From: Saccostrea cucullata
Taxonomy: Eukaryota
Length of the DNA stretch: 64,000 nucleotides
Assembly (NCBI RefSeq): GCF_032062105.1
Contig: NW_026939884.1
Location: 744,001 to 808,000, forward strand
Direction of reading: 5' to 3'
The translations under genes and the position numbers were made by a program. The notes beneath the pieces were generated by a model that was given only the letters and a program-made list of their open reading frames with translations, was not told where the DNA came from and ran no database searches. Below, one piece after another: positions 20,001 to 49,993 of the stretch. Numbering within the stretch: the first letter of the stretch is position 1; every line of letters starts with the position of its first letter.

Positions 20001-23000
20001 TGTGCGGTGTTGGGTTTATGGCAGCAGTGGGATACTGTATTTTAGACGCCATTGGAAGTGGAAAACTGGACAAAACTCACGTGTTTAACATCAAATCTCA
20101 ACCAGTAGTGAGTTAATGAATCAATTTACATCCAAAACATACTGAAGTATAATAACTGCAGAAGACAAGTCGTCTACAATAAGTTCTGTGAAGTTAGATT
20201 TAAAAGAAAAACTGTATAGAGAATCTTAGCTGACTACTAATTTGATGACGGAAAACACTGAAAAATAGACACGAATCTTCATACTTTAATGCTTGAATAT
20301 TTAGCAAAATATTTTGAGTTATAAATATATCTTATCATCTAGATAAATCAAAATGTATTAAGTATTGTGTGAGGAGCTGTATAATATATTGTCTTTTTTC
20401 CCAAACAGAAATTCAGCGATATTAGAAACTTCCCTTTGTCTTATTGGCTTGTCGCAGTAATGATCTCTACATATTATAGCTGTTTTATTCCTTACGTGGC
20501 AAATGGGAGGTAAGCCCTAAGAAGCATTTCAAAGACTTTCCAAGACTTTTATCAGTATCGCTTTAACATCTTTCAATCAAATGTAGTTTGTCTCTTTTCT
20601 AATTTGTAGTTTGTTTATTTTCTATATTTGTAAATTTTTAAAACTTGATTTCGTTGCATTTATTGATAAATACTATCGTTTTCTCACACGTATAAGAATG
20701 TTGATTGTCATCTTACCTTTTTTTCAGTAAATTCATTCAGGACAAGTATGGTTATTCCCGTGTGGAGTCGTCCTATATCAATGGAGCTGTTTATGACGTA
20801 TCCATTATTGTCTGTCTAACCACGGGCTTAATTCTCGTAAGATTTTCACATCTCATTTGAATTCTTGATTGAGACATTTTTTTAATTAACGAGTGCTGTT
20901 TATTAATGAAGGATACATGACACATACAAAAATTGATCCGAGGATTTGATATCTTTTTTGACTGGTTTTTAATAGAAATGACAAAAATAAAACATACCTA
21001 TACTTAAGTATAAAAGAAATCGTAAGTTGTCTTGGGTGATTAATGAGCGACTTTTTTTCGTTTTGTAAGTAATTTTATGCAAAGTTTTCACCTATTTTTA
21101 ACACTGTGAAAAAATCTTGCCAGTTCTCCCATTTTATATGGCAAACACTATACTGATCAATATGTGGATTCCTACTCATTGAAATATATAAGACAAATTA
21201 AAGATTATCTATCCCTGGTTATATTTATAAATTTTGGCCAAAAGTAGAAAAAAAATTGTTTGTTGAAAGAGAAAGATTCATATAATTCATATACCTGACT
21301 TTACTAGCTCAGGTCTTCCTGTTGTTCAAATTTTAGTCAATCCTAGTCGTGTCTTGGTGCTGAAATAAAACAAATCAGTAGTAATGAAAAATGGGAGATA
21401 AAGAACAGTATCTAAGCTAAAATGTCCATTTAAAAAATACAAACCATGAGAGCAAACATGGACCTGGACCTCTAAAACATCAGAGGTGAGAGCAAATGTC
21501 AAAAAAGAGTGGAATCCCCTGACGACCTGTCACACCAGCCGTGTGCTCTTTGTCATGATCAAGAAAACTGAAAAAAAGTCCATATACAATACAGTGTAAA
21601 ATAATGGTTTAAGAAATAATATAAAATGTCCATCAGCATTCGATTTAATGACAGGTTGTATTTACTAAAAGGCCATATCTTACTTCGTTTAGAAATTGAT
21701 TGTAAGTATTGCATGCTTTTGCATATCGAGTCAACTTACAGATATAAACACCATTTCTCCGAGATAGAGATACTGTAGTATATTGCTACATAAGTAAGGG
21801 AACCAGACAAAAATCCCTTCTTCACGTCTTTTTTCTAATTTTGAAAATATCCAAATAAGAAACAGATGTGTCACTCTCAGTTGTATCTTTCATTTAGAGC
21901 TCACTGGGATACTGTGTCGACATACGAATGGAAGGAATTTATAAGGCGCCGTTTCGGTATTTACTGCCAAAATTTTTTTTTCAAATTAAAAAGGTGATAC
22001 CACCTATTCGAATATCTGATATCACCATATCATTTTGAATAGGTGATTTCACTTATTCGAATAGGTGATATCACCTATTCAAATTATTTATGAAATAACA
22101 ACGACAATAACCAAGGCTATAGGTCCCGAAATCTTATTTACTTTCACTCTCGTTTTATAACTCATGATCGTTCTAGGAGACAAAAGATAACAGTTTTGAA
22201 TTTAGTTTTAAGCAACCCCAATACATGCAATAGAACTTGTAGTTTGTTTTGCTCACAAATTAATTTATGTCACTTATCTATTACGTATATTATAAGAAAA
22301 ATCGTGAAAAACGCACGAAAACTGGGTAGTCCGGATTTTCTTGGTTCCAGTGGTAATCTATATATTATAGGGAGCATTAATTATTCATTATTGTAATAAA
22401 TTCCAATAGGTGATATCTAATATTCGAATTGGTGATATCAACAATTCAAATTGAATAGGTGATATCACTTATTCGAATAGGTAATATCACCTTTTCAGCA
22501 AGAATAGGAAATTTAACCTATTCGAATAGGTGATATCACCTATTCATTTCCAATAGGTAATGACATCAATTCGAATAGGTGTTATCACCTATTCAAATAA
22601 GTGATCACACCTATTCGAATAGGTGATATCACCTATTGGAAATGAATAGGTGATATCAACAATTCAAATATGTGATATCGCCTATTCGAATAAGTGATAT
22701 CACTTATTCAAATAGGTGATATCACTTTTTGCCAGTAAAAATCAAAACGGCGCCTTATAGGAATTATTATAAATTAATAATATGATCGATATATGGTCGA
22801 TATATCTACATTTTTGATGTCTAGTTCATGGTCACACATTTTACTTCTTATGTATAATATATTTTCAAAGTGGCTTCATAGATACAAAAATAGCTTTGCT
22901 AAAAACGGGCCACAGTTGGTACCAATGGTCAAGCCAAATGACAGTGAGATACAGATCTCTAAAAGAGATTCTTGTACGTAACTATAGAATTGTAAAATAA

Positions 23001-28295: not shown

Positions 28296-29419
28296 GGTAT
28301 ATAACGTTATATAACAAAACACATTTCTTTAAACATCTTCGTTTCAGCAAATGTTATTTGATGTTCCGCTTAAATCTAAAGAAAACAATTTAAATACATA
28401 TATATAACACATTTATTATAAATTGAGTTAGCAAGAAAAAATATTTTTGAAACACTTATTCACAGAGCATATGTCAGAAATGCCAATTACAAAGACACAG
28501 CTTAACAGTTGGAATTTTGAATTTTACTGTTTTAGAAATCATTTTAAATTTAAATCTTATATAAAGCCAGACAGATTTCAACGAACTCCCAAACCCCATT
28601 ACAAAGAGTGCAATAAGCAAAACCAGATCGAATACAAGCAGTCATATAAGAAGAAATCTGAATAAATCGGTCGCCAAGAAAAATGAAATTATTCCCATAT
28701 GTTTAATCAATTATGCCTTCCTTAATAAATCTCTTCTTTTTTTTTAAAAAGTATCCTAAATGACTTCAAGTCAACGAAAAGAATTTCTAGAAAAAATTAA
28801 AAATTGAAGAATTTAGCCACCATGTGCAAAAAAACCATTAGAGTTATTAAGGTATTTAATAATAATGAAGGGGTTTTCATCAATTTTAATTAAATCTAAA
28901 CTAGTTAAAATTGCATTGCTATATATCGATAAAAGTTAGATAAACCAAATTCATACGAATGATTACATGTAAAACGCTGGTCATTATGCACCCTGAAAAT
29001 TTTAAGAGTTATCTGACCTTAAAGAAAATAAGAAAATTGTTAATTTCCCAAATTTTTTGTGGTAAATGATTCATTTTATTTCACAATTTAATAAAGAAAA
29101 AGTTAATGCATATTTCACCAAGAGATTTGTTTGAAATTCAAATAACTTTTTACAATATCTTTAAAAATATGCGCGCTGGTCATTGACTTCAAGGTAAAAT
29201 TCAAGGTGCAATTAATTGGACAATAATCAGTATTTTGAAAATTCCTTTGGTGGAGCATTTTTATTTGGTAATACCTTAAAAGTGCTACCATGATTAAATC
29301 ATTCATTTATTAGTTACAAAAAATGGTCGTTATACATTGAATACCTTAAGTATTTATGAAATATAAAGGTGTTTCCCAACTTTCTTCATGTATATATAGA
29401 TGCTTTTAAGTTGTTTGAC

Positions 29420-32061
29420 CTACGCATTCGGAAATTCAGACCATGATAGATTACAGCGACCGTTTCGTCTCTCTTTGAAATACTGCTTTAAATCTATTTG
29501 GTTATGATCTATGGCTTCTAAGAACTTTCTAAAGCGTTCAAGACTTTCTTTACAGTGTGAGTCACTTCGTCGTAGAGGTACCCTAGCTCCCTTTTCCATC
29601 TCACCAGTAGTGCAATGGTAAACATGGCAAAGGTATTCCAAACACACTTCGTCATTCGATGTCTCTTTTTCTAAGGAGCTTACCTCAGCTGATTCTTTGT
29701 CAATCAATTCTTCATTTTGTAAAAGCTGGAATGGAATGTATGGAGTTAACGAACAGTATTAAAGCTCAAAAGCCCATTCAAATAATACAAATTACGAGCT
29801 GAGCAAATATGGACCTCTACAACATTGGAGGTTTGATCAGGTGCATTGAAGGAGGAGGCTTCTCTTTCCTACCGGACACACCCGACTTGTGTTCCTTTTC
29901 ATGATCGGGATATTTTTTTTTGTTTATTTTTTAAGTAACTTCTATTTGTTTAAACAAATATACGAAAATAGTTTATAAAAATTGACAATACAAAATAATA
30001 CCGGTATATACTTACCGGTGAATCTTTATTGAATATTTTCTTGTCTTGCCAAGGATCGTGCATATTATGATGCTGTTCCAACTGGTACGTGTTTTTAATT
30101 ACTCCTTCCTTAATTAATCTTTCACAAAATCTGCACGAATACTGATTCCTCTTTGCTGTACACATCATAAGATCATGTGTCAGCTGCGAATCCCTAGTAA
30201 ATAGTTTTCCAAAAATTAAAATAAAAAACCACTGAAAAGTAATTTTAAAGAATATTAAATATCGAAGCGTAAACTGTATACAGGATTATTTACGCCAATT
30301 CTTATTTTCGCCATTTCACACTTGTGAACACGTTTGTCCCATTTTAAATTCTCGCAATCACACTGAAATTTATGTTTTCTTTGTATTTGCCATGTTTAAA
30401 ATTCCCTAACTGTGATTAGGACGAAAGGAACGAAAATAAAACGGCGGCGTAAATTATCCTGTATACACAGAAATCTCATGGCTATTTTTACCTGTGAATT
30501 TTGATTCCGCATTCCTTGCATTCAATAATTTTCTCACATTCTGTTTGGTGCATTTTAAACGATTTCCACGGAAAGAATTTCTTACAACGATTACATTCAA
30601 CCGGCTTATACTGACAATTTAGCATGTGAATTTCAACCCTTAACCGTGTATCTTTATAGTCACAATACTGATATCGGCATTTGATTATGGGACATAAATG
30701 ATACCTTAACTTTGATTTCGTGAAACATTCGTTGCAACTTTTGCACTCAGAAAAACATAGCTGAAGATGTTTGAACAAATCCTTCCTTGCAAATAATTTT
30801 TCACAGTGTGGACATTCTTTGATGGCAAATGGACAGTCGTGCCTCTGTTGGTCTTTTTGTAAGTACATTCCACCACAATTTTCACAATGTTGAGGTGCCC
30901 AGGGACAGACTGAAAGATGTTTCTTATGGTCTCTGAAATGTAGAACAGCCGTACATCCATAGGATTCGTTTTCACAAGAAACCAGTCTGTTTGGACACAA
31001 ACGTATATGTGAAGCCATTTTATGTCGCTGCATCTTGATTGTACAATTTTCAACAGGACATTTTTGGATAGAAAATTCACATTCCTCTAAATGCTTCTTC
31101 ATGACATTTCTTCTGGATGTAAAGGGACACTTTCTGTTTGGACACTGGATTGGTAAATACCAACACTCTTGAAGATGCTTTTCAAGTTTTCTGAAGTTTT
31201 CTCCGCTGCAGGAAAATGAACAGTCTCCATATTTGCAAGTCAGTATACAATGTTTGATAACATTTACAAGTCTCAGAAAACCAAGAAGTGGGCTGGAATC
31301 CTTTTTCTCTCCAAGAATACGATCCCTTTTCATAATATTTCGAAGACGCCGGAGAATTTTTTTCCTATCATTATAAGGTTTAACACCTCTCAGTTGGATT
31401 CTACGGAATGTTAGACGAGGACCTTAAATACATGAATTGAAACATATAAACACTACACTATATTAGTTAAGCAATATACACTACATTCAACATTCTTTAA
31501 CATAACATCTAATATACAAAAAATGAGAACGTGTTCTCCCAAAAAGATCGTTTTATTAAAAACAATCTTAATTATGATTTAATGGATGTGTGCTTCCCAC
31601 ATACCTTTTAGTGCCTTCACAAATCTATTTTTCAGCTGTATCAGGCATTCGCATACCGATATGTCACCCTTCCGCATTTTCTGCTGATATTTCCAACAAT
31701 AAATACAATTCAAGACTCTCATACACCGAGGAATTTTACATTTGTCGAGAACGATTGGAATGACTCGATATTTTCCTTTTGTAATCATGTACATCCAGAG
31801 TGCATTATCTAAGATAAACTGACAAAGTCCACTTCTGAGAAAGTTCTTGCTGACAAACAGTACCGAGGCCTTTGTTTTGTCGAGTCCATTCTCAATGATA
31901 TTTCTGACAATTGGCTCTCCTGGTACCAGATCTACGTCCGGGTCAAACATCCTTAATCCCAAAGTGCTCTTCATCATTTCCATGATACGACGAACATAAC
32001 CTTTGTCGCGTAGGCTGTAGTTGACAAAAATAGGGAAGCCATTTATATTCGTTTGAGCCAT
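29420..32061 (-). CDS. TIR domain + tandem TRAF-type zinc-finger protein (~623 aa, 4 coding exons)
   Basis: Exons 32061-31605, 31422-30492, 30193-30016, 29725-29420. Introns are GT-AG with phases 1,2,0, totalling 1872 nt in frame. Exon 1 has TIR boxes (IFVNYSLRD; LRMFDPDVDLVPGEPIVRNI; SVLFVSKNFLRSGLCQF; RVIPIVLDKCKIP). Exons 2-3 encode ~10 C-x2-6-C-x11-14-H-x1-4-C units. Confidence 0.85.
29735..29910 (-). mobile_element. Naiad 3' UTR fragment abutting the last acceptor site of the TIR-zinc-finger gene
   Basis: tggagttaacgaacagtatt..ggacctc..gatcaggtgc..accggacacacccg..atgatcggga is the reverse complement of the family 3' block. Confidence 0.75.
30272..30470. mobile_element. Small MITE in an intron of the TIR-zinc-finger gene
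   Basis: Inverted repeats ctgtatacaggattatttacgcc ... ggcgtaaattatcctgtataca. Confidence 0.6.
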
Positions 32062-32540
32062 CCTACAATTAAAAAGAATAACCGTTTTTATTTTGAATTT
32101 TTTTGTTTCTTTTTTTGTTTCTTTTTTTTTTTTCCTTTTTCATTTTGAATTTTTAGTTTTTTCTTCCGATTTTTTAATTGGCTGTTATTTTTTACTTATC
32201 TTAAGAATAATATTGATCTAGAAAATCCTGAACATAGCATATTAGAATAAACAAACCTAAATTAATTAATATTCTTATATTCTTATAACTCATATTTTAT
32301 GTATCGAAACAATGTAAGGGAATAGTGCATTTTAAACATGTTCTGGAAAATGTGCCGTATATGTTGATCATTTCTTACTTTTTTCCTATTCTTGCTATAT
32401 TATCAAGTCGATATTTATGAGAACTGCCTTTCTTTGATCAAAAATAAGAAATGGCAATGAGGGATTTTGACTGGAATTAAGAAGTTAAAAGAATGATATG
32501 TATTTTCAATAATTTCAACTAATTTAAACAAGTTCAAAAT

Positions 32541-32737
32541 GGCCTGTGGTCCTTTTCATAAAAAATTCTTATGACACTCTTAAAATTTTTATTTCAAAAA
32601 AGATATTTTTGAAATAATTTTTATAATGTAATCATAAAACTATTAATATTATGTAACAGAAAAAAATGCAGATGTTTGAAGAATAGGCGAAATTTTAGTC
32701 TTAGTTATAAGAATTTTTGTAAAAAGGGCCACTGGTC
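32541..32737. repeat. ~35-bp imperfect inverted repeat pair, probable degenerate MITE
   Basis: ggcctgtggtccttttcataaaaaattcttatgac versus gttataagaatttttgtaaaaagggccactggtc. Confidence 0.45.
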
Positions 32738-33599
32738 TTTTAAAGAACACAATAATGTTTCTTTTCAATGCTGTATTCAGCGACGCGGACCAGGAAGTCT
32801 AATTATTGCAGGAAATAATCCCAAAAACATTTTTTGAAAGTTAATTCTCTATATCAAGGCAATAAGAAATCTTGCTTTTGTGTTCAAAATCATGGGATAT
32901 CTATGGCTTGATTAAAAAGGGAAAAAAGTACTGTTTTGTTGTTATCATTTCTTGCAATACATGGAATTATATGAGTGAAAACTAGATAAGCATCATATTA
33001 TTTAATCTAATAATAAAAAACAGGTTTGAGAAAGAAAACGATATATGTTATTTGGAACATATAAGGCAAAATAGACAAAATGTATATTGTAAAAGAAAAT
33101 AACAGAATTACATACATTACATATATCTTGAATGTTATATTTTTGCTAAGAAAACTTATTCTTGTTAAACTTTTATAAAGACAAATTATGTTATATAACT
33201 TTTCAAATCACAAAATCACATACACCAACATTAATCTAATTTTATATGTATAAATAATCATGAATACAATAAAACAACAGAACAGTTGTTTTATTTTAAA
33301 GAGAATTGGGTCCGAATGCTCAGTTTTATTGCACGTTGTACCCACAAAAGTTTAAATACTTGATTTTAAAGAAGGAGCAAACTTTCACATCTTGTAATCG
33401 GTCATCAGCAAATAAAAAGGAATTGCTCTGATTCTACATGTACTTATAAGTTCTATTATGCCTTCCATATGCTCAGAATGAGAATTTTCCATTATACTGT
33501 TTCCCGCAGCTTCGTTATTTTTCAGCAAGAATACAAAACTAAGAAGGAATCTTTTTATAAATATGTCAATTATTAATGATACAAAGGGACATGAAGATT

Positions 33600-34500
33600 G
33601 TAGAGATCCCATGTTTCTCTACCATTTCAATATACACCTGGATTGGATCTCCCTAAACCTAAAGGTGCAGCATGAGTCTGATTCTACAATAAAGTTCTTT
33701 GATGTTGCTTTAAAAAGATGCTGGAGTTTCTGACAATAGTTGTGTCATCTTCGGAGATCAGTTCTCAAATTAACATTAACAAACCGTTGAAATTCTGTTG
33801 TGCATTAATTCCCTTCAAATGTTATTAGCAGACCAGTTTTTATATTCCTTTGAAGCAAAATTTATTCAGAAACTGGTAAATGAGGAAAAAATGCTATGGG
33901 CTTTAACTCGACATTCATATATATTGACGACGCGTATTATCAATTAACATTGGTTTCTTCCAGTTATATGTCTAGTGAACTTGAAATAAAAATACCACAG
34001 ATCTAGAGTCATTCACTTCTCTTTAATATACTTAATGTTTTACTGACTAAAGACGATTACCCTCAATTTATAATAAGTAAGCAAGTCAGTTAAAGTTTAA
34101 TTCAAAATCTTCAAAAACCTATTCTATAAAAATTTTTGTAATATCTCTGGTATTGCCCTGATTATGAATTGTCTGCATTTCGATAATTTTGTTGTCGTTA
34201 TGAAGACCCTGTAAAATGAAACCATCTGGTCGTCGTCGTATATTTAAAAAAAAGTTTTTTTTTAATACTGAATTCATTTGAAGAGGTACATTTGATTTCC
34301 TGTACAAATACATAGGCCCCACGACTCCAGTACAATTATGTGACTGTACAAATATTTGAATATATGTTAATTTGGCGCACCCGATTCCTCCCCTGGATTA
34401 ACCAGGGGTCTGTGTCTATTATAGTGCACAGATCTATACAAAAGGCTTTATAAATTTGAGTAGATTAAGATTGATCTTTGTTCGTTATCTTCGCCTTTTT
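33600..34500 (+). mobile_element. Old, heavily degraded Naiad-type PLE remnants
   Basis: aagatgctggagtttctg, ttcatatatattgacgac (YIDD) at ~33915-33930, gaacttgaaataaaa, and a diverged 3' block (ccgattcctcccctgg..ccaggggtctgtgt; tgttcgttatcttc) at 34375-34495. Confidence 0.55.
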
Positions 34501-34577
34501 CAATGGAAAAGTCATAAAATGATGACACATTTTATAACAATTTGACCAAAATGAAAGAAATAACATTGTAAACTTAC

Positions 34578-34700
34578 CTGAATTGAACGTGCTTTCAGTA
34601 TTGTATGTTTACAAATATAGATATACAGTATTACAGGCAATTAGAAAATGGGAAAACCGAATGAGGAAAACATCCCCTTGATATTCAGGAAGTCAGTTAC
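34578..34700 (-). promoter_or_regulatory. Candidate non-coding first exon and promoter of the TIR-zinc-finger gene
   Basis: The TIR exon begins with an acceptor (ttgtag|GATG, 32062), so an upstream exon must exist. A consensus donor CAG|GTAAGT lies at 34578/34577 on the minus strand, next to GGGAAAACC (kB-like) and CAGGAAGT (ETS-like) motifs. Confidence 0.4.
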
Positions 34701-35264
34701 AAGCATTACTGGAATCTATTTTTAAAAAAAACATAGTAATTCAAGCATTAAATGTACTTAAAGATATGAACATTTCTCCTTATCACTCTCTCTACATTTC
34801 GCTAGATCTCATCTTGATTTGTTGACAAATCAAATGAAATTGTGTGGTCGACCTGATAAAGAGCTACACTGATATAGGCGTTGTGTAATCTTTGATATTT
34901 AATATCTTATTAATATAAAAATATTTAATTATCATTTTATCGATAAAAGTTCAAGTTAGAAAAAAATAAGATATGATAATGAATTTTAACTCAGTTAATG
35001 GCAAAATAGTCCATTTTTTAAATTTTTAAAGCACTCTTAATTAAAGAAAAGTATAATCCTTTACGATCAGGGACACATGTATTAATACTCTGCTCCTTTT
35101 TGGTTTATTAAGTAGAGATAATCTGTCGTTCTTTAAACCCCCACGTTTTACTGAAGAAAATGCAGCTAAAACAATCCGTCTTTCCCTTAAACTTCAATAT
35201 GCCAATCAAGGAATTGACACGGTACATCCTGTATTTCCTATAAATATACATCGACTATTGCTTC

Positions 35265-38200
35265 CATAATAGTAATTTCCATTCCTACGTCGATACGATA
35301 TATCGTGTTGAGCTTGAGATAAAAGATACCACAGAGTCCGACACTTCTGTTTCATACTTGGATATTTTACTTGAAAAAGACACTAATGGTAATCTAACAA
35401 CCAAGCTATATGATAAACGTGATGACTTTAACTTTTCTATCGTCAACTTCCCTTACATATGCATCAATATACCTTCATCACCTGCATACGGAGTATACAT
35501 GTATATATCTCAGTTGATTCGATATGCAAGAGCATGCTCTACGTATAAACAATTTCTAAAACGAGGTAAATTATTGACAAGCAAGTTGACGAAACAAGAA
35601 TATCAGCAGTCTAGTTTAAAGTTATCATTTCGAAAGTTCTATGGTCGATACTATGACCTTGTCAGCAAATATAGTTTATCATTGAGTCAAATGCTGACAC
35701 GATTTTCATACCAATTGTTAGTCCATTATTTATACACTGAATTGACGACGGATTTTTTCCCGTTCTTTCCTGATCATGACAAGGAGCACATGGCGGGTGT
35801 GACCGGTCGGCAGGGGATGCTCACTCCTCCATGACACCTGATCCCACCTCTGATGTTTCGGGGGTCCGTGTTTCCTCTGCTACTATTTTGTATTGTTTTA
35901 TGGACTTTGAGATTGTATACTGTTCGTTATCTCCATATCCTTCTTCCAAACTTATTAATTACAAGAAAACTTTACAGGGCCTGGATATCGACTATCTGAA
36001 ACATAATCCTCCATCGTGTTCATGTTTCTTTTTAAAGTTGTCATTAGATCTTCTAAAAGAAATACCGTCCTTAGCACTAGTTGTTCTTGATTTTTCAGTA
36101 AGTTCTTCCATTGCTTGTACAATTTTTGTGAAGTCATGATGAACTATAGTCCTGCTGGACACGTTATTACAGGTGGCGTAAATATAGTTAATAATGATGA
36201 CCTTAGATCAATAATTTTAAAAGGTCTTAAATATAGGTAACGCCGATCCTTCAGGCGTCGGGGTTTCGTAAATATTATGGATTCTGTAGAAGGTTTTGCA
36301 AGACCATTGGCCAAATATGAAAAAGAAGACGTTTACACTTTGTCAGAATGGATTAAATGTATCAGATCCATGCTACAATCTCGTATTAGAAAATTGAGGG
36401 GCAATATGAAAACCATCTATCCTTCTTTATTCAACAATCCAAAAGTGAAAAAAAAGAATTAGATAGATTACATGATAAGTACGTACTGGTCCCTGCTGAC
36501 AAACAGGTAAGAACAATGTCTCCGTTTGTAAGGCTAATTATATAAATTGGTTTTTATTAGAAGAACTTGGATTTAATTCTAGAAATGGTAATCCAACGAA
36601 TACTTATAGTTCCCTTTCTAAAGAAGAAATTCTTAAAAATCATATGTCAGTCTTGAATTATTTTAAGATCCCAAAGAACCAAAATTAATTTGAACTACCA
36701 TATCTACATTGGATTCCGAAACTTCATAAAAATCCATACAAACAAAGATACATAGCGGGTTCCAGTAAATGCTCAACCAAGCCTCTTTCTTTACTCCGCA
36801 GACGTGAAGGAGAAACTTCAAGAGTACTGTGCAACAATATATTCAAGTGGTGTTAATCAGATGTGGATACTGAAAAATTCCAAGGAACTTTTGGACAAAT
36901 TGAAATTTCAAGGTTTAGCCAAAATCGACAGCTTAAAAACTTGCGACTTTTACGCACAACCATTCCAATAATAAATGAAAGTCCAGGGTTTTTGATATCA
37001 TTGACAGGTGCTTTTCAATGGACATGGAACTCGTAAATTTATTTACCTTGTCATTGGTCATTTGCAAAACTATTTTGTTTAAACATGCTGATTGTACACA
37101 CAAGTACTCTGAAGTTGACATTAAAAAATGCTTGAGTTTCTGATTGCCAATATCTATGTGTTTTTGGAAACCAGGTCCTCCAACAATCAATTGGAATTCC
37201 TATGGGTAGCAATTGCGCCCGATATTAACAGACCTATTTCTGTATTCATATGAAGCAGAATTTGTCCAAACTCGTATATGTGAAAAGAAGAAAACACTTG
37301 CTGTGGCCTTCAACTCGGCATTTAGATATATCGACGATTGTCAATGAACAATCATTATGGTAATTTCCATTCTTATGTCGATACGATATATCCCGCTGAG
37401 CTTGAAATAAAAGATACTACAGAGTCTGACACATACCGGTATGTTTCACATTTGGATATTTTACTTGAAAAAGACATTGATGGTAATCTAGCAAACAACC
37501 TCTATGATAAACGTAATGACTTTAACTTTATCGTCCACTTCCCTTACTTATGCAGCAATATACCTTCATCACCTGAATACAAAGTTCACATATCTCAGTT
37601 GATTCGATAAGCAAGAGTATGCTCTACGTATGAACAATTTCTAAACCGACGTAAATTATTGACAAACAAGTTGAAGTAAGGATATGGAAATAACGAACAG
37701 TATTCAATCTCAACGTCCATTAAACAAATATACAAAACAAGAGCAGAGCAAACACGGACCTCCGAAACATCAGAGGTGGGATCAGGTGCCATTGAGCAAC
37801 CGGTCACACCCGCCGTGTGCTCATTGTCATAATCAGGAAATAACGGAAAAAATCCGTAGTCAATTCAGTGTATAAATAATGGACTAACAATTGGTATGAA
37901 AAACGTCAGTCAGCATTTCATTCAATGATAAATTGTATTTGCTGACAAGGTCATTGTATCGACCATAGAATTTACGAAATGATGACTGTTGATATTCTTG
38001 TTTCATCAACTTGCTTGCAATAATTTACCTCGTTTAAGAAAATACAATTTATAATTGAGTCGTATGCAGGTGATGAAGGTATATTGCTGCATAAGTAAGG
38101 GAAGTTGACGATAGAAAAGTTAAAGTCATGTTTATCATATAGCTTGGTTGTTAGATTACCATTTGTGTCTTTTTCAAGTAAAATATCCAAGTATGAAGCA

Positions 38201-38438
38201 GATGTGTTACTCTGTGGTATCTTTTACAAGCTCACCAGAAACAAAATTATCAGCAGTCAAGTTAAAAGCTTTTCGTTAAGTTCTATGGTCGATACAATGA
38301 CCTTGTCAGCAAATACAATTTATAATTGAGTCAAATACTGACTGATGTTTTTCATAATAAGTGTTGGTCCATTATTTATACACTGAATTGACGATAGCTT
38401 TTCCGTTATTTCCCGATCATGGCAAAGAGCACACGGTG
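35265..38438. mobile_element. Complex tandem/inverted Naiad-type Penelope-like insertion
   Basis: Order: + 3' copy (35265-35940); + long copy (35940-37670) with CxC linker PPSCSC (36008-36025), NYSPAGHVITG, WIPKLHKNPYKQRYIAGSSKCSTKP, GIPMGSNCAP and FRYIDD (37321-37338); inverted 3' copy (37670-38235); + 3' copy (38245-38438), whose end resumes at 41989-42125. Confidence 0.85.
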
Positions 38439-41400
38439 CCCAGATAGCAGGATGTAATTGGACCTTTGTTGGGCCAACAATGCTCCTTATGTTGCCACCA
38501 TTTGTATTCAACATTGGGCCATCGGTAATTTTTCGGCCCTTAATCAAACCAACTTGTTGGCTTATTGTTGGGCCACTGTAACAGTTAATACTTGCCACTG
38601 TTGGGCCAATGTATTATTTCAATATAGGGCAAACGTTATTTTTTTGGGCCATTGTATAATGTTGGGCCAACTTTTCATCGGCCCTTAATTAAACCAACTT
38701 GTTGGCTTATTGTTGGGCCAATGTAACAGCTAATATTGGGCCACTGTCGGGCCATTGTATTTTTTAATGTTATCATTTTTGTACATTTGGGCCATTGTAA
38801 GCAATTAATATTGGCCCAACGGTAATTTGCTCATCGGCCCTTAATCAAAACTTGTTGGCTTCTTGCTGGACCAACGAACGGATATTATTGATGTTGGGCC
38901 ACTTATCTTTCAATATCAGGCAAACATCAGTTTGGACCAACGTTGGTTTGTATCTTAATGGATCTCTATCATGACAACTCATTTGCTCTTTACTGGTTGG
39001 CCATTTGTCCTCAAAATTGACAAACAAATACATATATCAAGGTTATACTAGTTTAGTACAGTTTAATTAAAAGCCCTTTAATACTATCTAAATATGCTAG
39101 ATTAATAGTTTAATACATATTCTCAATACATATCTCATAGCATTAATTAAAAACTGAGGAAAAAGAAATCAAAATATAAATTTAAATTATAACATACTAG
39201 TATTTTATTGCTCAGTGCATGAAGAAAACATTACATTGTAATAAAGAAATAAAAGTTGATGCTCACTTCAAGCGATACATGTAGGGTTACATGTCATTGA
39301 ATGTATACTCCCTCTCTGATGTAAATTTATGCACAAGTTCAGAAAAAACCAGGTATCAATAAGCAGGTCAAACAAATAAACAAAGCCCCCCTGTTCTTTT
39401 TTCATTTTGTTTACTTACACAAAAAATGTTTATTCTGCATCGTGTTTGTAACCGACAAACAGACACAGAAAAGGATAGAATACAGGTTTGTCACAGTACA
39501 TAACAGAAAAAAGCTAGGCACTGACACTTTCCATCTGATCCCTCTCCTAAAGTCTCCTCCTCCCCCTTCTTTTCTTCTCTGTCTTCTCCTCCCCCATCCC
39601 TGTCCTTGGCATACCTTAGCTACTCTTTGATTGTGTTTGAATGTCTTTTTAAAATCTCCAGTAGCACTAAAATTGTAGTATTTGGTACTTAATACATTTG
39701 TTACTTTTCTCAGTAAAGAGTAAACGTACGATTAAATTTACAAGTATATCACTATATGTTTAAGCTGTCAATTAAGGAATAACCGTCTTTTTTGTTTCAT
39801 GGTGTATTTAAGTGATTAGCTTGCATGATGAAGGCATTTATGCATAACATTTTACGCTTGATCATCATTATCATCACAACAATTTTGATTCAATGTTGCC
39901 CCATATAAAATGCATGTATAGAAAAACACTGAACAAATTTTAATTGAAAGAACCCAATTTATGTTAAGTACTGAATAAATTTTTTTAACTTCAACATTTT
40001 TCAAAATGTTTCATATGCACGACGTTAAGTGTATATAAGTAAATTAAGTGGTATCGGAAATATATTTTACTAGTCACACATTTCAATCTAAATAAGGGGC
40101 AAATTATTTATTGTTTTAACTGTATCAAAACATATTTATTTTATATTTTATTTTTCTTGTATAAAAACAAAACATTTAATCATTGATAATTTATTTTGTT
40201 TTGATAAGTTATAAGAATTTTAACAAGCCTTGTAAATTCATTTTAGCTAGCTTGTATTTTCAAGTAGGATTGGTTTATAGATTTATTTTTGATTGTAGAT
40301 ACGATCAGATTTGTTTATATACAGATTTGTAACAATTAAATGTTTGTACACATTGGCCCAAAATATCGGGCCGACATTGGGCCAAGGAGCAAAATGACAC
40401 TGGACCAACGTCATTTGCCAACATCGACCCAATGTTCCTATTGACGTTGATCAAACAATGTCGCATTCATTGGGCCAATGTTGGCGCAACGTTGGACCAA
40501 TATCTGTAGAAATAACACTCTACACTCAACGTTGGCCCAAAATATCGGGCCAACATTGGGCCGATGAGCAAAAAAAATGTCATTTGCCAACATTGGCCTG
40601 ATGTATTACACAACATTGGCCCAATGTTAGCATGCCATCTGGGGTACATGACCCAACAGCACCTGGCCTCTGCACTTCCCCGTGTCTGCTTTGCATTGAT
40701 TTGTACATGATATCGTTTAAAAACTAAACGTTAATTCAGCTGTGCCGAGGCAAACATATATAAATACTTACAAAGTGGATGCAGATATGCCAGGTATCAT
40801 CTTTACGCTCGCTGTGTCAAATTAAAAATTATTTTTGTTTTACCCATGAATCAGATTCAGAATCCCCAAACAAATATTTTCTCTCATGATAATAATTTTA
40901 TGATATAATGCGAACAGTTAGCCCAACATTAGCGCACCATTATACATAACCAGCTATCGATAATCCAGCCAGAATAAAGGTAACCCAACAAGATAATACA
41001 ACCATAATGTAAGATTAGGCCAACGATATTCTGCTATCTGGTTTATTACAAATAAATATAAGCATAAACTCAATACAAAAAAAAAGAATAAAACACTCTT
41101 TGGTGCTGTGATCATTTAAGTGCAAAGTTAAAAATATCATATCTAAGCAAGAGCAGTCATCCAATGATAAGCATGGACATAGAAAGTCCTCTTTATTATT
41201 TCAGAATGTGCCAACGTTGTCCCAACGTAAAGCTCAAAGCTAATTATAAAATTGACACCATCAATTAATTGTCAGTATAATAATATTGGGCCTACGTTGG
41301 CCCTATATGAATATCCCATCTTTTAAACACCTAAACAAAATAACACTTGTGTGTATTACAAACATTGTGCCAATGTTATCTACCAACTTGATAGGACACG

Positions 41401-41986
41401 TTCTTTAAGGGTGTATAGAAACAATGGGCCAACGTTAGACCAACATAAGACAATCAACTTGATAAGACATTTTCTTTAAGGGTGTATTAGAAATATCGGG
41501 CCAACGTTGGGCCAACATACTACTTGAACTTGATAAGGCACTTTCTTAAAGGGTGTATTACAAACAATGGGCCAACGTTGGGCCAACATAATACTAACAA
41601 CTTGATAAGACATTTTCTTTAAGGGTGTATTACTAACAATGGGCCAACGTTGGGCCAACATATTACTATCAACTTGATAAGACACATTCTTTAAGGGTGT
41701 ATTACAAACATCGGGCCAACGTTGGGCCAACATACTACTACCAACTTGTAAATACACTTTTCTTTAAGGGTGTATTATAAACATTGGTCCAACGTTAAAC
41801 CAATACCAGGATCCTTCCTTCCTTGGGAACTAAAGTGAATGGAAGTTGAATGGACCAACGTATGGCCAACATAGGAATTCTTTCATGGTCTGACTTGGTA
41901 ACATTGGTTTGGCCCAACGTTGTTCCCCCAACGCCAACCAAACAACCTTTTACAAATGTTGGCCCAACATAGTCATGCTATCTGGG
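38439..41986. mobile_element. CMC/EnSpm-like non-autonomous DNA transposon nested in a Naiad 3' UTR
   Basis: TIRs CCCAGATAGCA...TGCTATCTGGG with a 2-bp TSD TG (38437-38438, 41987-41988). Many subterminal ttgggccaa(cgtt) repeats. The interrupted Naiad sequence rejoins (acacgg|tg|gttgtaaccggtcagcagggga). Confidence 0.75.
41350..41800. repeat. ~61-bp tandem repeat, about 7 copies, inside the EnSpm-like element
   Basis: Unit approximately aacttgataagacattttctttaagggtgtattacaaacaatgggccaacgttgggccaacatactact. Confidence 0.85.
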
Positions 41987-41988
41987 TG

Positions 41989-42125
41989 GTTGTAACCGGT
42001 CAGCAGGGGATACTCACTCCTCCATGGCATCTGATTTTTGGAGGTCCTTGTTTGCACTGCTCCTATTTTTTTTTGCTTTATATACTTTTCATCTTAAATA
42101 CTGTTCGTTATCTCCATATGTTTAA
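41989..42125 (+). mobile_element. Remainder of the Naiad 3' UTR displaced by the EnSpm-like insertion
   Basis: gttgtaaccggtcagcaggggatactcactcctccatggca..ctgttcgttatctccatatgttt. Confidence 0.8.
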
Positions 42126-45100
42126 TCTTATATAGGTTCTTTTAATTTCTTTTACAACATGGAAAAAAATGTATTTCACAATTTATGGGTTTAGGTAAAT
42201 ATAGGCATTGCATTCTTTATGTTCTTATTTTTCGAATTCATCGGTAGTGTAACAGCATCGGTCCTTCAAAAAATCATTATACCGCACTCAATCTGTTAGG
42301 AAAATCATTTTTAGTGCTGTTCTTTACAAAAGACTGGATATAGAAATAAGATACCTGTGCTTGTCAAATATTCTTAAGCAGATATTTTATAAAGTGTCTG
42401 AATGATGAATTTTATGGGGAAAAACAAAATGGTAAAAAATCGGAAAAATCACAAAGGCTGATTTTTTTTTTTTACCATTTTGCTTTTCATAAAATTTACC
42501 TGGTTTGCTATTTTTTTCCTTAAGTTCATATTACACTTTTAGCACAAAACTAATATAATCTGAAATTTGTTTTCATCTGTAAACCTTTACTGAGTGTGAT
42601 TTGTCCATATTTGTATTTTTTGAAGTATTAATCAATATTTTACAAGTCTATTTAATTTTTCAAGTCTAATGAGAAAAAAATTCAAAGAGTAAACTTCCCT
42701 AAACCATGACAGGTATCTGAGAAACTTAATTTGTGTTTTGAGGAAATCGAATTTGAAAACTTTCCCATATAAATCTTCATGAGTAATTTTTTGGTTTTTT
42801 TTTTTTAAATACAGAATTATTCTTTTTTATCTTACCCCAGCGCAAAGAGAATTAAGACGTTATGCGTTATATATTGCAGCAAACCAGTTTCCAATTCAGA
42901 GATCCTTTTGCAATACTGAATGAAAAAGGAAAATTTCACTCGGTGAAAATATTGATCTTTTTTTTCACAGATGTATATCTATTAGGATGAATGTATACTT
43001 ACCAAAATGAGAGAACGATTACGCAATATCTCTGACAAGCAGGAATCTCTGCTATTGATCTGATTCGTTGCATAATCATAGAGTTTCTTCTCTAAGTTTA
43101 TAGTTAGACTGATTGTTGCACCCATAGGATTTCCACTGAGAATCATTCGTGACTTTGCAATAAAAGAATCTGATATTCTATTCTGCAATGCATTTTTAAA
43201 AAATGCCTGTCTGTGATGAAAATGCCAGACTTGCTTACTTCATGTTGGTTACTACAATATGTACATCTTTTGGATTTAAAAAAGCGCTACTATATAATCA
43301 ATACAGATATATTATAATTTTAAACATTCAATAATGAGGTTATATAGTTTCAAATAAAAGCCATTCAAATTTGATCATTTTGAAACATATATCGACTAGT
43401 TTTATTTTCTTTCCGTCATAACTGCAATCATTTCTTCCAATATATATCTTGTAGCATTTAAGTCTACTTTAACAAAACATACGAGTTTTGATTCTTTTTT
43501 ATATATTAGAAATATATATATTATTAATTTATTATATATATTTATTCTATTCCATGTCAAGAGAGAAAAAATAAAAAAAAATGTTAAAGGTATAGAATAC
43601 GTCTAAATTGTCTGATATTCTCGGGTGAAGGCCATTAGTTGCACAAGTGATCCTCGAATGTTGGGTCGACGATGTAATGACGATAACGTGAGAATGATGA
43701 CGTGATGATACGAACGAAAACGATAACGCGATAACGACAATGCAATACTGAAAAGTTTGGAGAAAAATACAAAAAAAAAAGTTTTGTTCAAGAGTATTCT
43801 CCAAAAAAAAATTCCAGATATAGAAAAGAAATATCAAAAACTGATAACAAAACAGAACAAATATCATAGTAAATTTGAAAATACTAGTAATTGTATTATT
43901 TAAGAAATCCGAATTAGTCAATAAAGTTTACTTCGTGAGAAGTTTTAGCCGTAGAATGTTTGAACTCGCTCAGCACTACCCTCAGACAGGAATTTCTATA
44001 TATAATAAATATCAAAAATAGCTAAATTGGTGGAGACTTATCAGATACTGGTACAATACACGACGAAGAACATATCTCACGTGTCCCCTAGGAGAGAAAG
44101 AAGGCGTATATATAAATAAAAACATTAGGCTTTAAAGTTAAGTTCATGTTTCCATTTTGACCACATTTATTGTTTATTTATCACCATTATTAGACATATA
44201 TATATCTCCAAATTTGTAACTCTTTACAAATCGTTATTATTGTGCAGAATATTGTAAACTGAAAAAAAAACACTCGGTGATTCCTTTCCTTTGCTCGATC
44301 GATAAGAGAGCTGGTGCACAGGAATTTCATATTCCAACGTGTCGTTTCCAACAGTAATCAAGCTGATCTCAATACGGAGGGATTTGCTGCGTTGCAACTA
44401 ATGCCGGAATAAAATATGTCATTCGGAAAAATAAACTAACATGACAGCTGATTTAATCGGTGTGTTCGAACTTTAAGGTCAGGTTGTGTTGTTAGGAATG
44501 GTGTCTCTTACATATAGAGATTGTGATTCGCTGTACTTTAGCGATCGATTAGAGGTATTGATCTAAGAGCATCATATGCACGTTATGTAATCGAAATTCT
44601 TTGTTTTGCTTTTAGTGTAGCTTTTGACGGCTGGAGCGTCAGGGAAACAAATGTTAAATTGACAAAATGCCTCAAAATTAAGTGTCTAAAAGCCTCTAAA
44701 GCGTCATCACTCTAGAAAATTAATTTGTTTACCTTATCACACAGAGTGTAAGTTGAGATTGTCTCCCTTTTTAGAAATGGAAAAATTGCTTTGATTATTG
44801 TGTTTAATTCCTTGATTTTGGTGAAATGCAGGAGGGGGTGTATAAAAGACACTAGAGGAAACTAAATTCAATGAAATTAGAAAACCCTTTAAGTTGTTTT
44901 AAATAATAAAGCATTGGGTGCAAATAAAACAATATATTTTTTTTTACCAATTCTTCGTTTATTTGGTAGTTGAGCTACAGAGAACTTGAAATATTTTAAT
45001 CTTTGATCATTCTGTATACTAAGTTGAATTGATGCAGAAGGCAAATAAAACCGGGTCATATCACGGGACAGCGATTAAAATTACACACGGGTTTCTATTT

Positions 45101-49465: not shown

Positions 49466-49739
49466 ATGCAGGATGAGACAACTCAGGCCAATATTTTGGA
49501 CGAACTTGGTGCCACCCCTGTCCGGAAAAATGGACATATTTCAGGGGATAATGAGCGGATTATTCTCAATGTGGGAGGTGTCCGGCATGAGACCCACGTC
49601 TCTACTCTCCGGACTATCGCCAACACTCGGCTAGCCAGACTGGCTGAGAGACACCTAATGTTAGAACATAAACGTGAGGAATACTTCTTTGACAGGCATC
49701 CCTCCGTCTTTAACTCTGTGATAGATTTCTATAGAACGG
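49466..49739 (+). CDS. Voltage-gated potassium channel, Shaw/Kv3-like; first coding exon (T1 tetramerisation domain)
   Basis: ERIILNVGGVRHETHVSTL..TRLARLAE..EEYFFDRHPSVFNSVIDFYRTG, followed by a donor G|GTAAGT at 49740. An in-frame stop lies upstream of the ATG. The next exon may start at the acceptor ttttatag|63998 at the window edge. Confidence 0.8.
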
Positions 49740-49782
49740 GTAAGTTAATGTTTCCTAATTCTGTGATTTCTAAAGAACGGAT

Positions 49783-49993
49783 TCTGTGAAATCACTTATT
49801 TTCGTAGGGGTTTGATTTTCGTTATTTTCAAGGTATGGAGAGACCCACAGATTTATGACCACTTGGAAATATAAAATTTCATATGCATTACTATTCAACA
49901 CTTCTCCAACAACAAAATCAAATTTCCACAAAGCAATAGTTTTCCTCAAACCTCGAAAACTACACACGACAAAAATATGTGATTTTACTGTAT
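49783..49993. mobile_element. Small MITE (ctgtgaaatcac...gtgattttactg termini)
   Basis: Imperfect inverted termini ctgtgaaatcacttattttcgt / acgacaaaaatatgtgattttactgta. Confidence 0.5.

Follow-up and report, generated by a model that had tools for sequence, protein, structure and literature searches.

A gene whose protein joins an N-terminal TIR domain to a long array of TRAF-type zinc fingers was found in a 64,000-nucleotide stretch of Saccostrea cucullata DNA (NCBI RefSeq assembly GCF_032062105.1, contig NW_026939884.1, positions 744,001 to 808,000), which is called the window here and gives the coordinates used below. Our analysis of sequence and predicted fold suggests, with a probability of roughly 0.55, that the TIR–finger family to which this gene belongs is a bivalve-wide group of orthologous, cytosolic and non-enzymatic TIR adaptors or regulators. 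The constituent domains are all known; the family makes a promising lead but does not amount to a new kind of system.

The gene lies on the minus strand. Its model, built from the window, has four coding exons (32061-31605, 31422-30492, 30193-30016 and 29725-29420) separated by GT-AG introns of phases 1, 2 and 0, and its reading frame of 1872 nt (623 codons, 623 aa) contains no internal stop; there are no N letters in the window. From the N to the C terminus the protein consists of a TIR domain, a basic linker, ten C2HC fingers and one C2H2-like finger, and it ends in a variable spacer followed by a terminal helix. The first coding exon (31605-32062) holds one base of the 5′ untranslated region (UTR), the ATG at 32061 and the entire TIR (aa 1-152), and is followed by the phase-1 intron. 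The second (30492-31422) encodes the basic linker (aa 154-214, 31238-31420; 18 K/R and 4 D/E), fingers 1-9 and the first half of finger 10, up to the phase-2 intron (30491-30194) that interrupts the finger array (aa 215-508, 30058-31237). The rest of finger 10 and finger 11 lie in the third (30016-30193), before the phase-0 intron, and the fourth (29420-29725) carries a weakly conserved spacer, the terminal helix and the TAG stop. This amphipathic helix (aa ~580-605, 29477-29554) has a loosely conserved RxxFRxLxExI consensus and a hydrophobic moment of 0.52. XP_062592690.1, the S. cucullata protein that RefSeq misnames 'zinc finger protein 345-like', matches the 623-residue model at every letter.

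Transcript contigs from four public runs, belonging to four studies, were aligned to window positions 29200-35000 (5,801 letters). Only one of the four runs was recorded as RNA and the other three were guessed to be so; their contigs nonetheless skip introns with GT-AG ends. The contigs are about 94% identical to the window (57-60 differences per 934 letters), and because of this difference of about 6% their source is not the sequenced individual but a close relative or some divergent population. The gene is thus transcribed in close relatives, and the contigs show presence only, not level or induction. All four coding exons are on a single contig in run X3 (2189 nt) and in run X7 (1892 nt), three are in X2, and the four studies together carry every exon junction. 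The TIR-to-finger joint was found in all four runs, reported as 31424/31610 with three letters between. It has the same length as the modelled 31605/31422 joint, from which it differs by two substitutions, so the reading frame is kept across it. A first-pass annotation, made from the sequence without searches, had proposed four in-frame exons of ~623 aa joining a TIR to fingers; this was borne out by the window model, the contigs and the identical RefSeq protein, and the ten C2HC units and the C2H2-like unit that it listed are all present in the model.

The coding exons of that four-exon gene stand, but its exon count does not, since all four runs join position 32062 to a fifth, non-coding 5′ exon ending at 34578 (joint 32061/34577, CT..AC ends). 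We place this exon at 34578-34626 on the minus strand, with its donor at 34577; the contigs reach 34-49 nt upstream, so the 5′ limit is provisional. It contains an in-frame TGA upstream of the ATG at 32061, which indicates that the exon is untranslated, that this ATG is the start and that the TIR is truly N-terminal. Additional upstream coding exons (leucine-rich repeats [LRR], transmembrane segment, RING) were ruled out, as the sole upstream exon seen is short and has the in-frame stop. Two separate genes or a pseudogene were likewise ruled out by the spliced contigs, the intact frame and a dN/dS of 0.12.

The window protein was searched against databases exon by exon, while relatives were used for whole-protein searches and the full-length fold. 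Exon 1 matched Pfam TIR_2 (E 1.6e-11, 45.2 bits, cut-off 28) and TIR, and exon 2 matched zf-TRAF PF02176 (E 2e-10) and zf-TRAF_2 PF15965 (E 1.9e-8), above the Pfam cut-offs, as the first-pass annotation had expected. Neither the last two coding exons nor the tail alone had any Pfam match. No RING or MATH was matched in any exon, and no MATH in ten full-length relatives; no death domain, LRR/Ig, ARM or tandem SAM domains and no zf-C2H2 were matched in the exons or the relatives, the units being C2HC. The absence of a transmembrane segment, noted before, also held, with a best 19-residue hydropathy mean of 1.39 in the window protein and maxima of 0.67-1.47 in 15 members.

The TIR begins at residue 7-11 of the protein, and its AlphaFold model (predicted local distance difference test score 86) has the TIR fold. 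Structure comparison placed it closest to Hydra TRR-2 (Z 16.9, root-mean-square deviation [rmsd] 2.2, 125 aligned), MyD88 (Z 16.4) and IL-1RAcPb (Z 16.1), followed by IL-18R beta (15.6), TIRAP (15.3), SARM1 (14.3) and oyster TIR-STING (13.5); bacterial and plant TIRs had Z values of 13 or less. By sequence, the family TIR profile ranked TLR2/6/1, TRR-2 and TIRAP first. The BB-loop Pro-Gly is the family consensus and is kept in the window protein (Pro47-Gly48, 31918-31923, minus strand, located by alignment). In pairwise alignment to a TLR TIR and in the column table, Ile83 (31813-31815, minus strand) occupies the catalytic-glutamate position of NADase TIRs, which is the Glu of the TLR motif WCxxE. 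Across the family this position is Glu in 3 of 22 rows and Asp in one, and I, L, V, M, A, Q or D occupy it in 19; the Glu has been lost in most lineages. Since the only rows to retain it are Solemya and a pair of unassigned TIR exons, all with short branches and close to the family base, NADase activity is unlikely in the oyster TIRs. The median TIR net charge is +6 in the family versus −2 for 61 other TIRs, a comparison whose p-value overstates independence because the rows are related; two oyster TLR TIRs that were checked are slightly acidic.

A phmmer search of the TIR exon against 1.84 billion representatives ranked a distinct group first. Its ten full-length top matches all contained TIR_2 and zf-TRAF, both above cut-off in nine. 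The oyster members are from Saccostrea echinata, Ostrea edulis, Magallana gigas (XP_011422825.3) and Magallana angulata, and others are from Pinctada imbricata, three Mytilus species, Solemya velum, Sinanodonta woodiana, Mactra antiquata and Dreissena polymorpha. All members with an organism on record fall within Bivalvia, and a bivalve-only range is likely from these sequences. When the Solemya protein and the family alignment were put through word-index protein searches, nothing but the query came back, which reflects the sensitivity limit of these searches and not absence, and the ESM Atlas, which covers larger clusters only, yielded TRAFs and bacterial TIRs but no cluster of this architecture. 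Placed in a tree together with 61 other TIRs, the family TIRs form one group (SH-aLRT 99), into which one long-branched outside row falls. In a tree of 18 proteins, Solemya, the Pteriomorphia (99/99) and the Imparidentia-like rows (99/98) come out apart from one another, and Sinanodonta adjoins the last; the tree agrees with bivalve phylogeny, and the family is inherited vertically. Mytilus apparently has two deeply diverged members, P0007 (M. edulis) and P0019/P0162 (M. coruscus, M. californianus); one of the two forms has 527 aa and fewer fingers, while the other, of ~720 aa, has additional fingers and its BB loop is degenerate.

Solemya, Sinanodonta and Mactra have three introns in common with the window gene: that of phase 1 behind the TIR, that of phase 2 within finger 10 and the next one, of phase 0. 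The first two are also clear in a further European Nucleotide Archive (ENA) assembly. One more intron splits the TIR in Sinanodonta, Mactra and the ENA assembly. The phase-1 intron had been taken earlier as a sign of exon shuffling. The intron is real but not diagnostic, because it is ancient, the intron that precedes the TIR falls within the UTR, and the TIR is split in Heteroconchia; recent or oyster-specific shuffling was ruled out by the shared ancient introns and the bivalve-wide tree.

Among the best 150 candidates in the S. cucullata genome, the family TIR profile found only the window gene and a copy on contig C2002, at 216 bits versus 57 or less for all remaining TIRs. All 16.3 kb of C2002 run collinear with window 29680-44901, at 91-96% identity, so that the contig is most likely an uncollapsed haplotig and not a recent duplicate, although RefSeq annotates its copy as a second gene (XP_062577603.1) and the synonymous divergence of 0.14 is high for alleles. 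Between the two copies dS is 0.14, dN 0.017 and dN/dS 0.12, alike in TIR and finger exons, so both parts are under purifying selection with equal constraint.

Residues 215-474 hold the ten C2HC units, and the C2H2-like unit is at 483-508. Fingers 1-4 align across 13 members with no loss of a ligand, and members differ in how many fingers the middle of the array contains. The PDB sequence matches closest to the fingers were those of TRAF6 (E 3.5e-10), TRAF4, TRAF5, FBXO30 and FLN29. TRAF-type fingers are protein-binding modules. The 60 residues before finger 1 carry a net charge of +6 to +14 in all 15 members tested, and the isoelectric point (pI) of the whole protein is 8.6-9.5 in every member tested. 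No TRAF6 (PxExxAr/Ac) or TRAF2-type motif is conserved across 15 members: PxExx[FYWDE] is absent from the window, Ostrea and Magallana proteins, with scattered, unaligned matches in 5 of the 15. In the model of the Solemya protein the TIR is predicted with confidence and the linker with low confidence; the fingers follow one another as independent units, and after a disordered spacer comes a final helix at 600-628, the tail being low-confidence coil and one helix; its predicted TM-score is 0.33, so the relative arrangement of the domains is not predicted.

These data are consistent with an adaptor or regulator that would work as follows. The TIR may be a docking module, as it lacks the catalytic Glu and has the BB-loop proline, and would join TLR/MyD88 TIR assemblies through the BB loop, aided by its basic surface. 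The basic linker, by analogy with the polybasic motif of TIRAP/MAL, could help to hold the protein at acidic membranes, and the rod of about 11 fingers together with the terminal helix would offer protein-binding surfaces to a further partner. Probable TIR partners are the numerous bivalve TLR and MyD88 TIRs (PMC4346834; PMC10279657); the TLR repertoires of bivalves are the largest known (PMC10279657), and their many cytosolic TIR proteins, regarded as partners, are nearly all uncharacterised (PMC10279657; PMC4346834). Because the protein has no death domain, RING or TRAF-binding motif, a signal cannot pass from it down the MyD88-IRAK-TRAF6 route. It may then act as a brake that caps TIR assembly or competes in it, a tentative proposal and the slightly likelier of two; the other, also possible, is that it routes the assembly to another output. 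An as yet uncatalogued component of immune signalling, specific to bivalves, in which the finger array senses a ligand or recruits a non-canonical effector and the TIR gives an output independent of MyD88-IRAK-TRAF6, seems improbable.

Several points weigh against the adaptor or regulator reading. The role itself is proposed from sequence and fold, and the contigs give presence and not level. The top Z values are near ties, and a common fold does not show function. Several members have no BB-loop proline any more (Solemya, Sinanodonta, Dreissena and family member P0013), the TIR tree does not settle the donor family of the TIR, and the protein-wide basicity would fit nucleic-acid binding or nuclear import equally well.

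A Rel/Dorsal-type kappaB-like site, GGGAAAACC, is present at 34650-34658 (plus strand), about 70 nt upstream of the donor of the 5′ exon, adjoined by a looser GGG...TTCC element at 34666-34678; both are identical in C2002. The 64 kb contain three kappaB-like sites versus 3.3 expected by chance, and the upstream one may serve as a lead for NF-kB feedback induction, but as no more than a lead.

Two further S. cucullata loci contain finger exons and no family TIR nearby, with dN/dS of 0.16-0.20 and near-saturated dS. The first (G000:C10511:183670-184945, L023:7670-8945, plus strand) is about 40% identical, with the same phase-2 intron and next exon, and apparently has its own ATG inside the finger exon. 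The second (G000:C5186:143793-144926, L025:5793-6926, minus strand) contains a 70-residue finger block in near-exact internal triplication; its exon starts with the same phase-1 acceptor, and an upstream partner exon was not found. No TIR exon lies within ~27 kb (C10511) or 39 kb (C5186) upstream, and none was found as a partner among the best 150 candidates of the genome search. A fragment of a long interspersed nuclear element (LINE)-type endonuclease/reverse transcriptase lies about 1 kb upstream of the C5186 paralogue on the opposite strand.

The fingers could instead make the protein a stand-alone sensor, with basic fingers binding a ligand, which could be nucleic acid from a virus or bacterium, ubiquitin chains or a protein of a pathogen, and clustering the TIRs, which then signal. 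A TIR preceding a long repeat array recalls the TIR-then-sensor layout of oyster TIR-STING, itself a structural neighbour (Z 13.5). Every domain is basic, the finger count varies mid-array while fingers 1-4 are fixed, and the internal triplication in one TIR-less paralogue also fits. However, each genome has a single TIR-bearing gene, which is under purifying selection, whereas bivalve receptors are expanded and evolve fast; in addition, TRAF-type fingers are generally known to bind proteins, and no oligomerisation domain was found. A sensor is rather unlikely.

We regard as no more probable a non-immune or nuclear role, in which a basic zinc-finger protein acts in development, gametogenesis or gene regulation and the TIR serves only for self-association. 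The linker is polybasic and resembles a nuclear localisation signal, the pI is above 8.6 in all members, and a single TIR-bearing gene is strictly retained. The persistence under purifying selection of the TIR-less paralogues, with the same finger exons, indicates that the finger array is useful without a TIR. But the fingers are C2HC TRAF-type and not classical DNA-binding C2H2, the Foldseek matches to CTCF/ZFP568 have a very poor rmsd of 20-32 Å, and the TIR is as constrained as the fingers.

The first-pass annotation had proposed that the protein could short-circuit or dampen the TIR-to-TRAF step. In a short circuit it would replace MyD88-IRAK-TRAF6 and connect receptor TIRs directly to signalling at the TRAF level, for instance if its fingers paired with the fingers of a TRAF that carries a RING. 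The MyD88-like fold of the TIR and the similarity of the fingers to those of TRAF6 (E 3.5e-10) agree with this, but we consider it quite improbable and found no support for it, as RING, MATH, a death domain and conserved TRAF6/TRAF2-type motifs are all lacking. In TRAFs the RING is the ligase, and the coiled coil with TRAF-C serves oligomerisation and substrate recognition (PMC6027159); the protein lacks these working parts and a death domain, and so cannot do the work of MyD88 or TRAF6. Oysters, moreover, retain expanded MyD88 and TRAF sets (PMC4346834).

Lastly, that the TIR is a NADase or small-messenger maker switched on by the fingers, with an activity that the ancestor had and that Solemya-like members may retain, is very unlikely: WCxxE is kept in Solemya and the two unassigned rows, but the Glu is replaced in 19 of 22 rows, the window included, and TLR TIRs carry the same Glu yet are regarded as non-enzymatic.

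As to novelty, no description of the architecture or of the ortholog locus identifiers was found in the searchable full-text literature, a scope that leaves mostly outside it the subscription journals, including the catalogue of Gerdol et al. (2017). Surveys of oyster (PMC4346834) and Aplysia TIR proteins list ARM-, IG-, EGF-, TPR- and orphan TIRs and no finger fusion. In our own judgement the chance that the 2017 catalogue already lists the family, as a numbered ecTIR-DC family without function, is somewhat below even. The suggestion that the architecture is undescribed thus held within that literature, but rarity did not: it is bivalve-wide and present in RefSeq and UniProt under uninformative names. 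Names such as 'zinc finger protein 345-like' hide the gene, and immune transcriptome studies would miss it. Most bivalve cytosolic TIR genes are lineage-specific expansions, whereas this one is an ortholog with shared introns since the bivalve common ancestor. The common ancestor of living bivalves dates to about 500 million years ago. This retention, introns included, marks the gene as a core component and not turnover. The M. gigas ortholog makes the family testable in infection RNA-seq and in oyster TLR reporter assays.

Elsewhere in the window, the 3′ part of a SYDE-type RhoGAP gene (C2_SYDE, C2, RhoGAP; 1186-8406, plus strand) flanks the TIR gene on its 3′ side, and the first exon of a voltage-gated potassium-channel-like gene (BTB_2/T1, E 9e-19) lies at 49466-49789 (plus strand). 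The Mactra ortholog adjoins an anoctamin gene, and local synteny with the window was not seen. Decayed reverse-transcriptase ends of a retroelement, with the motif LYDKRDDFNF, occur at ~4159, 14503, 17370, 35244-36139, 37326, 38000, 52181 and 62672, two or more copies being just upstream of the 5′ exon. Tandem arrays with a palindromic core in each unit are present at 41380-41796 (period 72), 22400-22725 (22/49) and 54091-54346 (42/22), and array-related motifs across 38450-41900 are probably a non-autonomous DNA transposon. Short high-copy repeats in the two downstream introns of the TIR gene (30269-30467 and 29739-29995) attract many unrelated transcript contigs, and the former has inverted ends like a miniature inverted-repeat transposable element.

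Compared with known systems, the protein is like MyD88 and TIRAP/MAL in being cytosolic, without a transmembrane segment, and in having the TIR fold, a BB-loop proline and no expected catalysis. TIRAP also carries a polybasic stretch beside its TIR, comparable to the basic linker. However, MyD88 has a death domain followed by a C-terminal TIR, while the window protein has no death domain and places its TIR at the N terminus, before about 11 fingers and without a TRAF6-binding motif. With TRAF2-6 it shares tandem TRAF-type C2HC fingers, TRAF6, TRAF4 and TRAF5 being the best PDB sequence matches, but it lacks RING, coiled coil and MATH, and the TIR takes the place of the RING. TRAF6 has fewer fingers. 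TRAFD1/FLN29 and XAF1 resemble it in their TRAF-type fingers, low-complexity tail and lack of RING/MATH, with a weak match to the FLN29 fingers. The earlier analogy to TRAFD1 is loose: that protein is without a TIR, and its inhibition works by way of a TRAF6-binding motif that lies in its middle region and not in its finger (PMC4438057) and that is absent from the TIR–finger family.

The family differs from Toll-like and IL-1 receptors in having no transmembrane helix and no LRR or Ig match, from SARM1 and other NADase TIRs in having Ile83 instead of the catalytic Glu and no ARM or tandem SAM, and from the Kruppel-type C2H2 proteins implied by its RefSeq name in that its units are C2HC with no tandem C2H2. 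Like the ecTIR-DC families (Gerdol et al. 2017), as far as they are described in the accessible sources, it is a cytosolic TIR protein conserved in bivalves and not seen in vertebrates here. In those sources, ecTIR-DC family 6 is ARM-death-TIR-TIR and 14 II is a protein of ~3000 aa with LRR, neither being the TIR–finger family, families 11 and 13 are named without domains, and a zinc-finger family is not mentioned (PMC6321704, PMC6836662, PMC5549309). The closest likeness in layout is to oyster TIR-STING (6wt7, Z 13.5) and to 5for (Z 9.6), where an N-terminal TIR likewise precedes another module. We take 5for to be the TIR of BCAP. The partner module is the STING ligand-binding domain in TIR-STING, DBB-ankyrin in BCAP/BANK1, and zinc fingers in the family described here.

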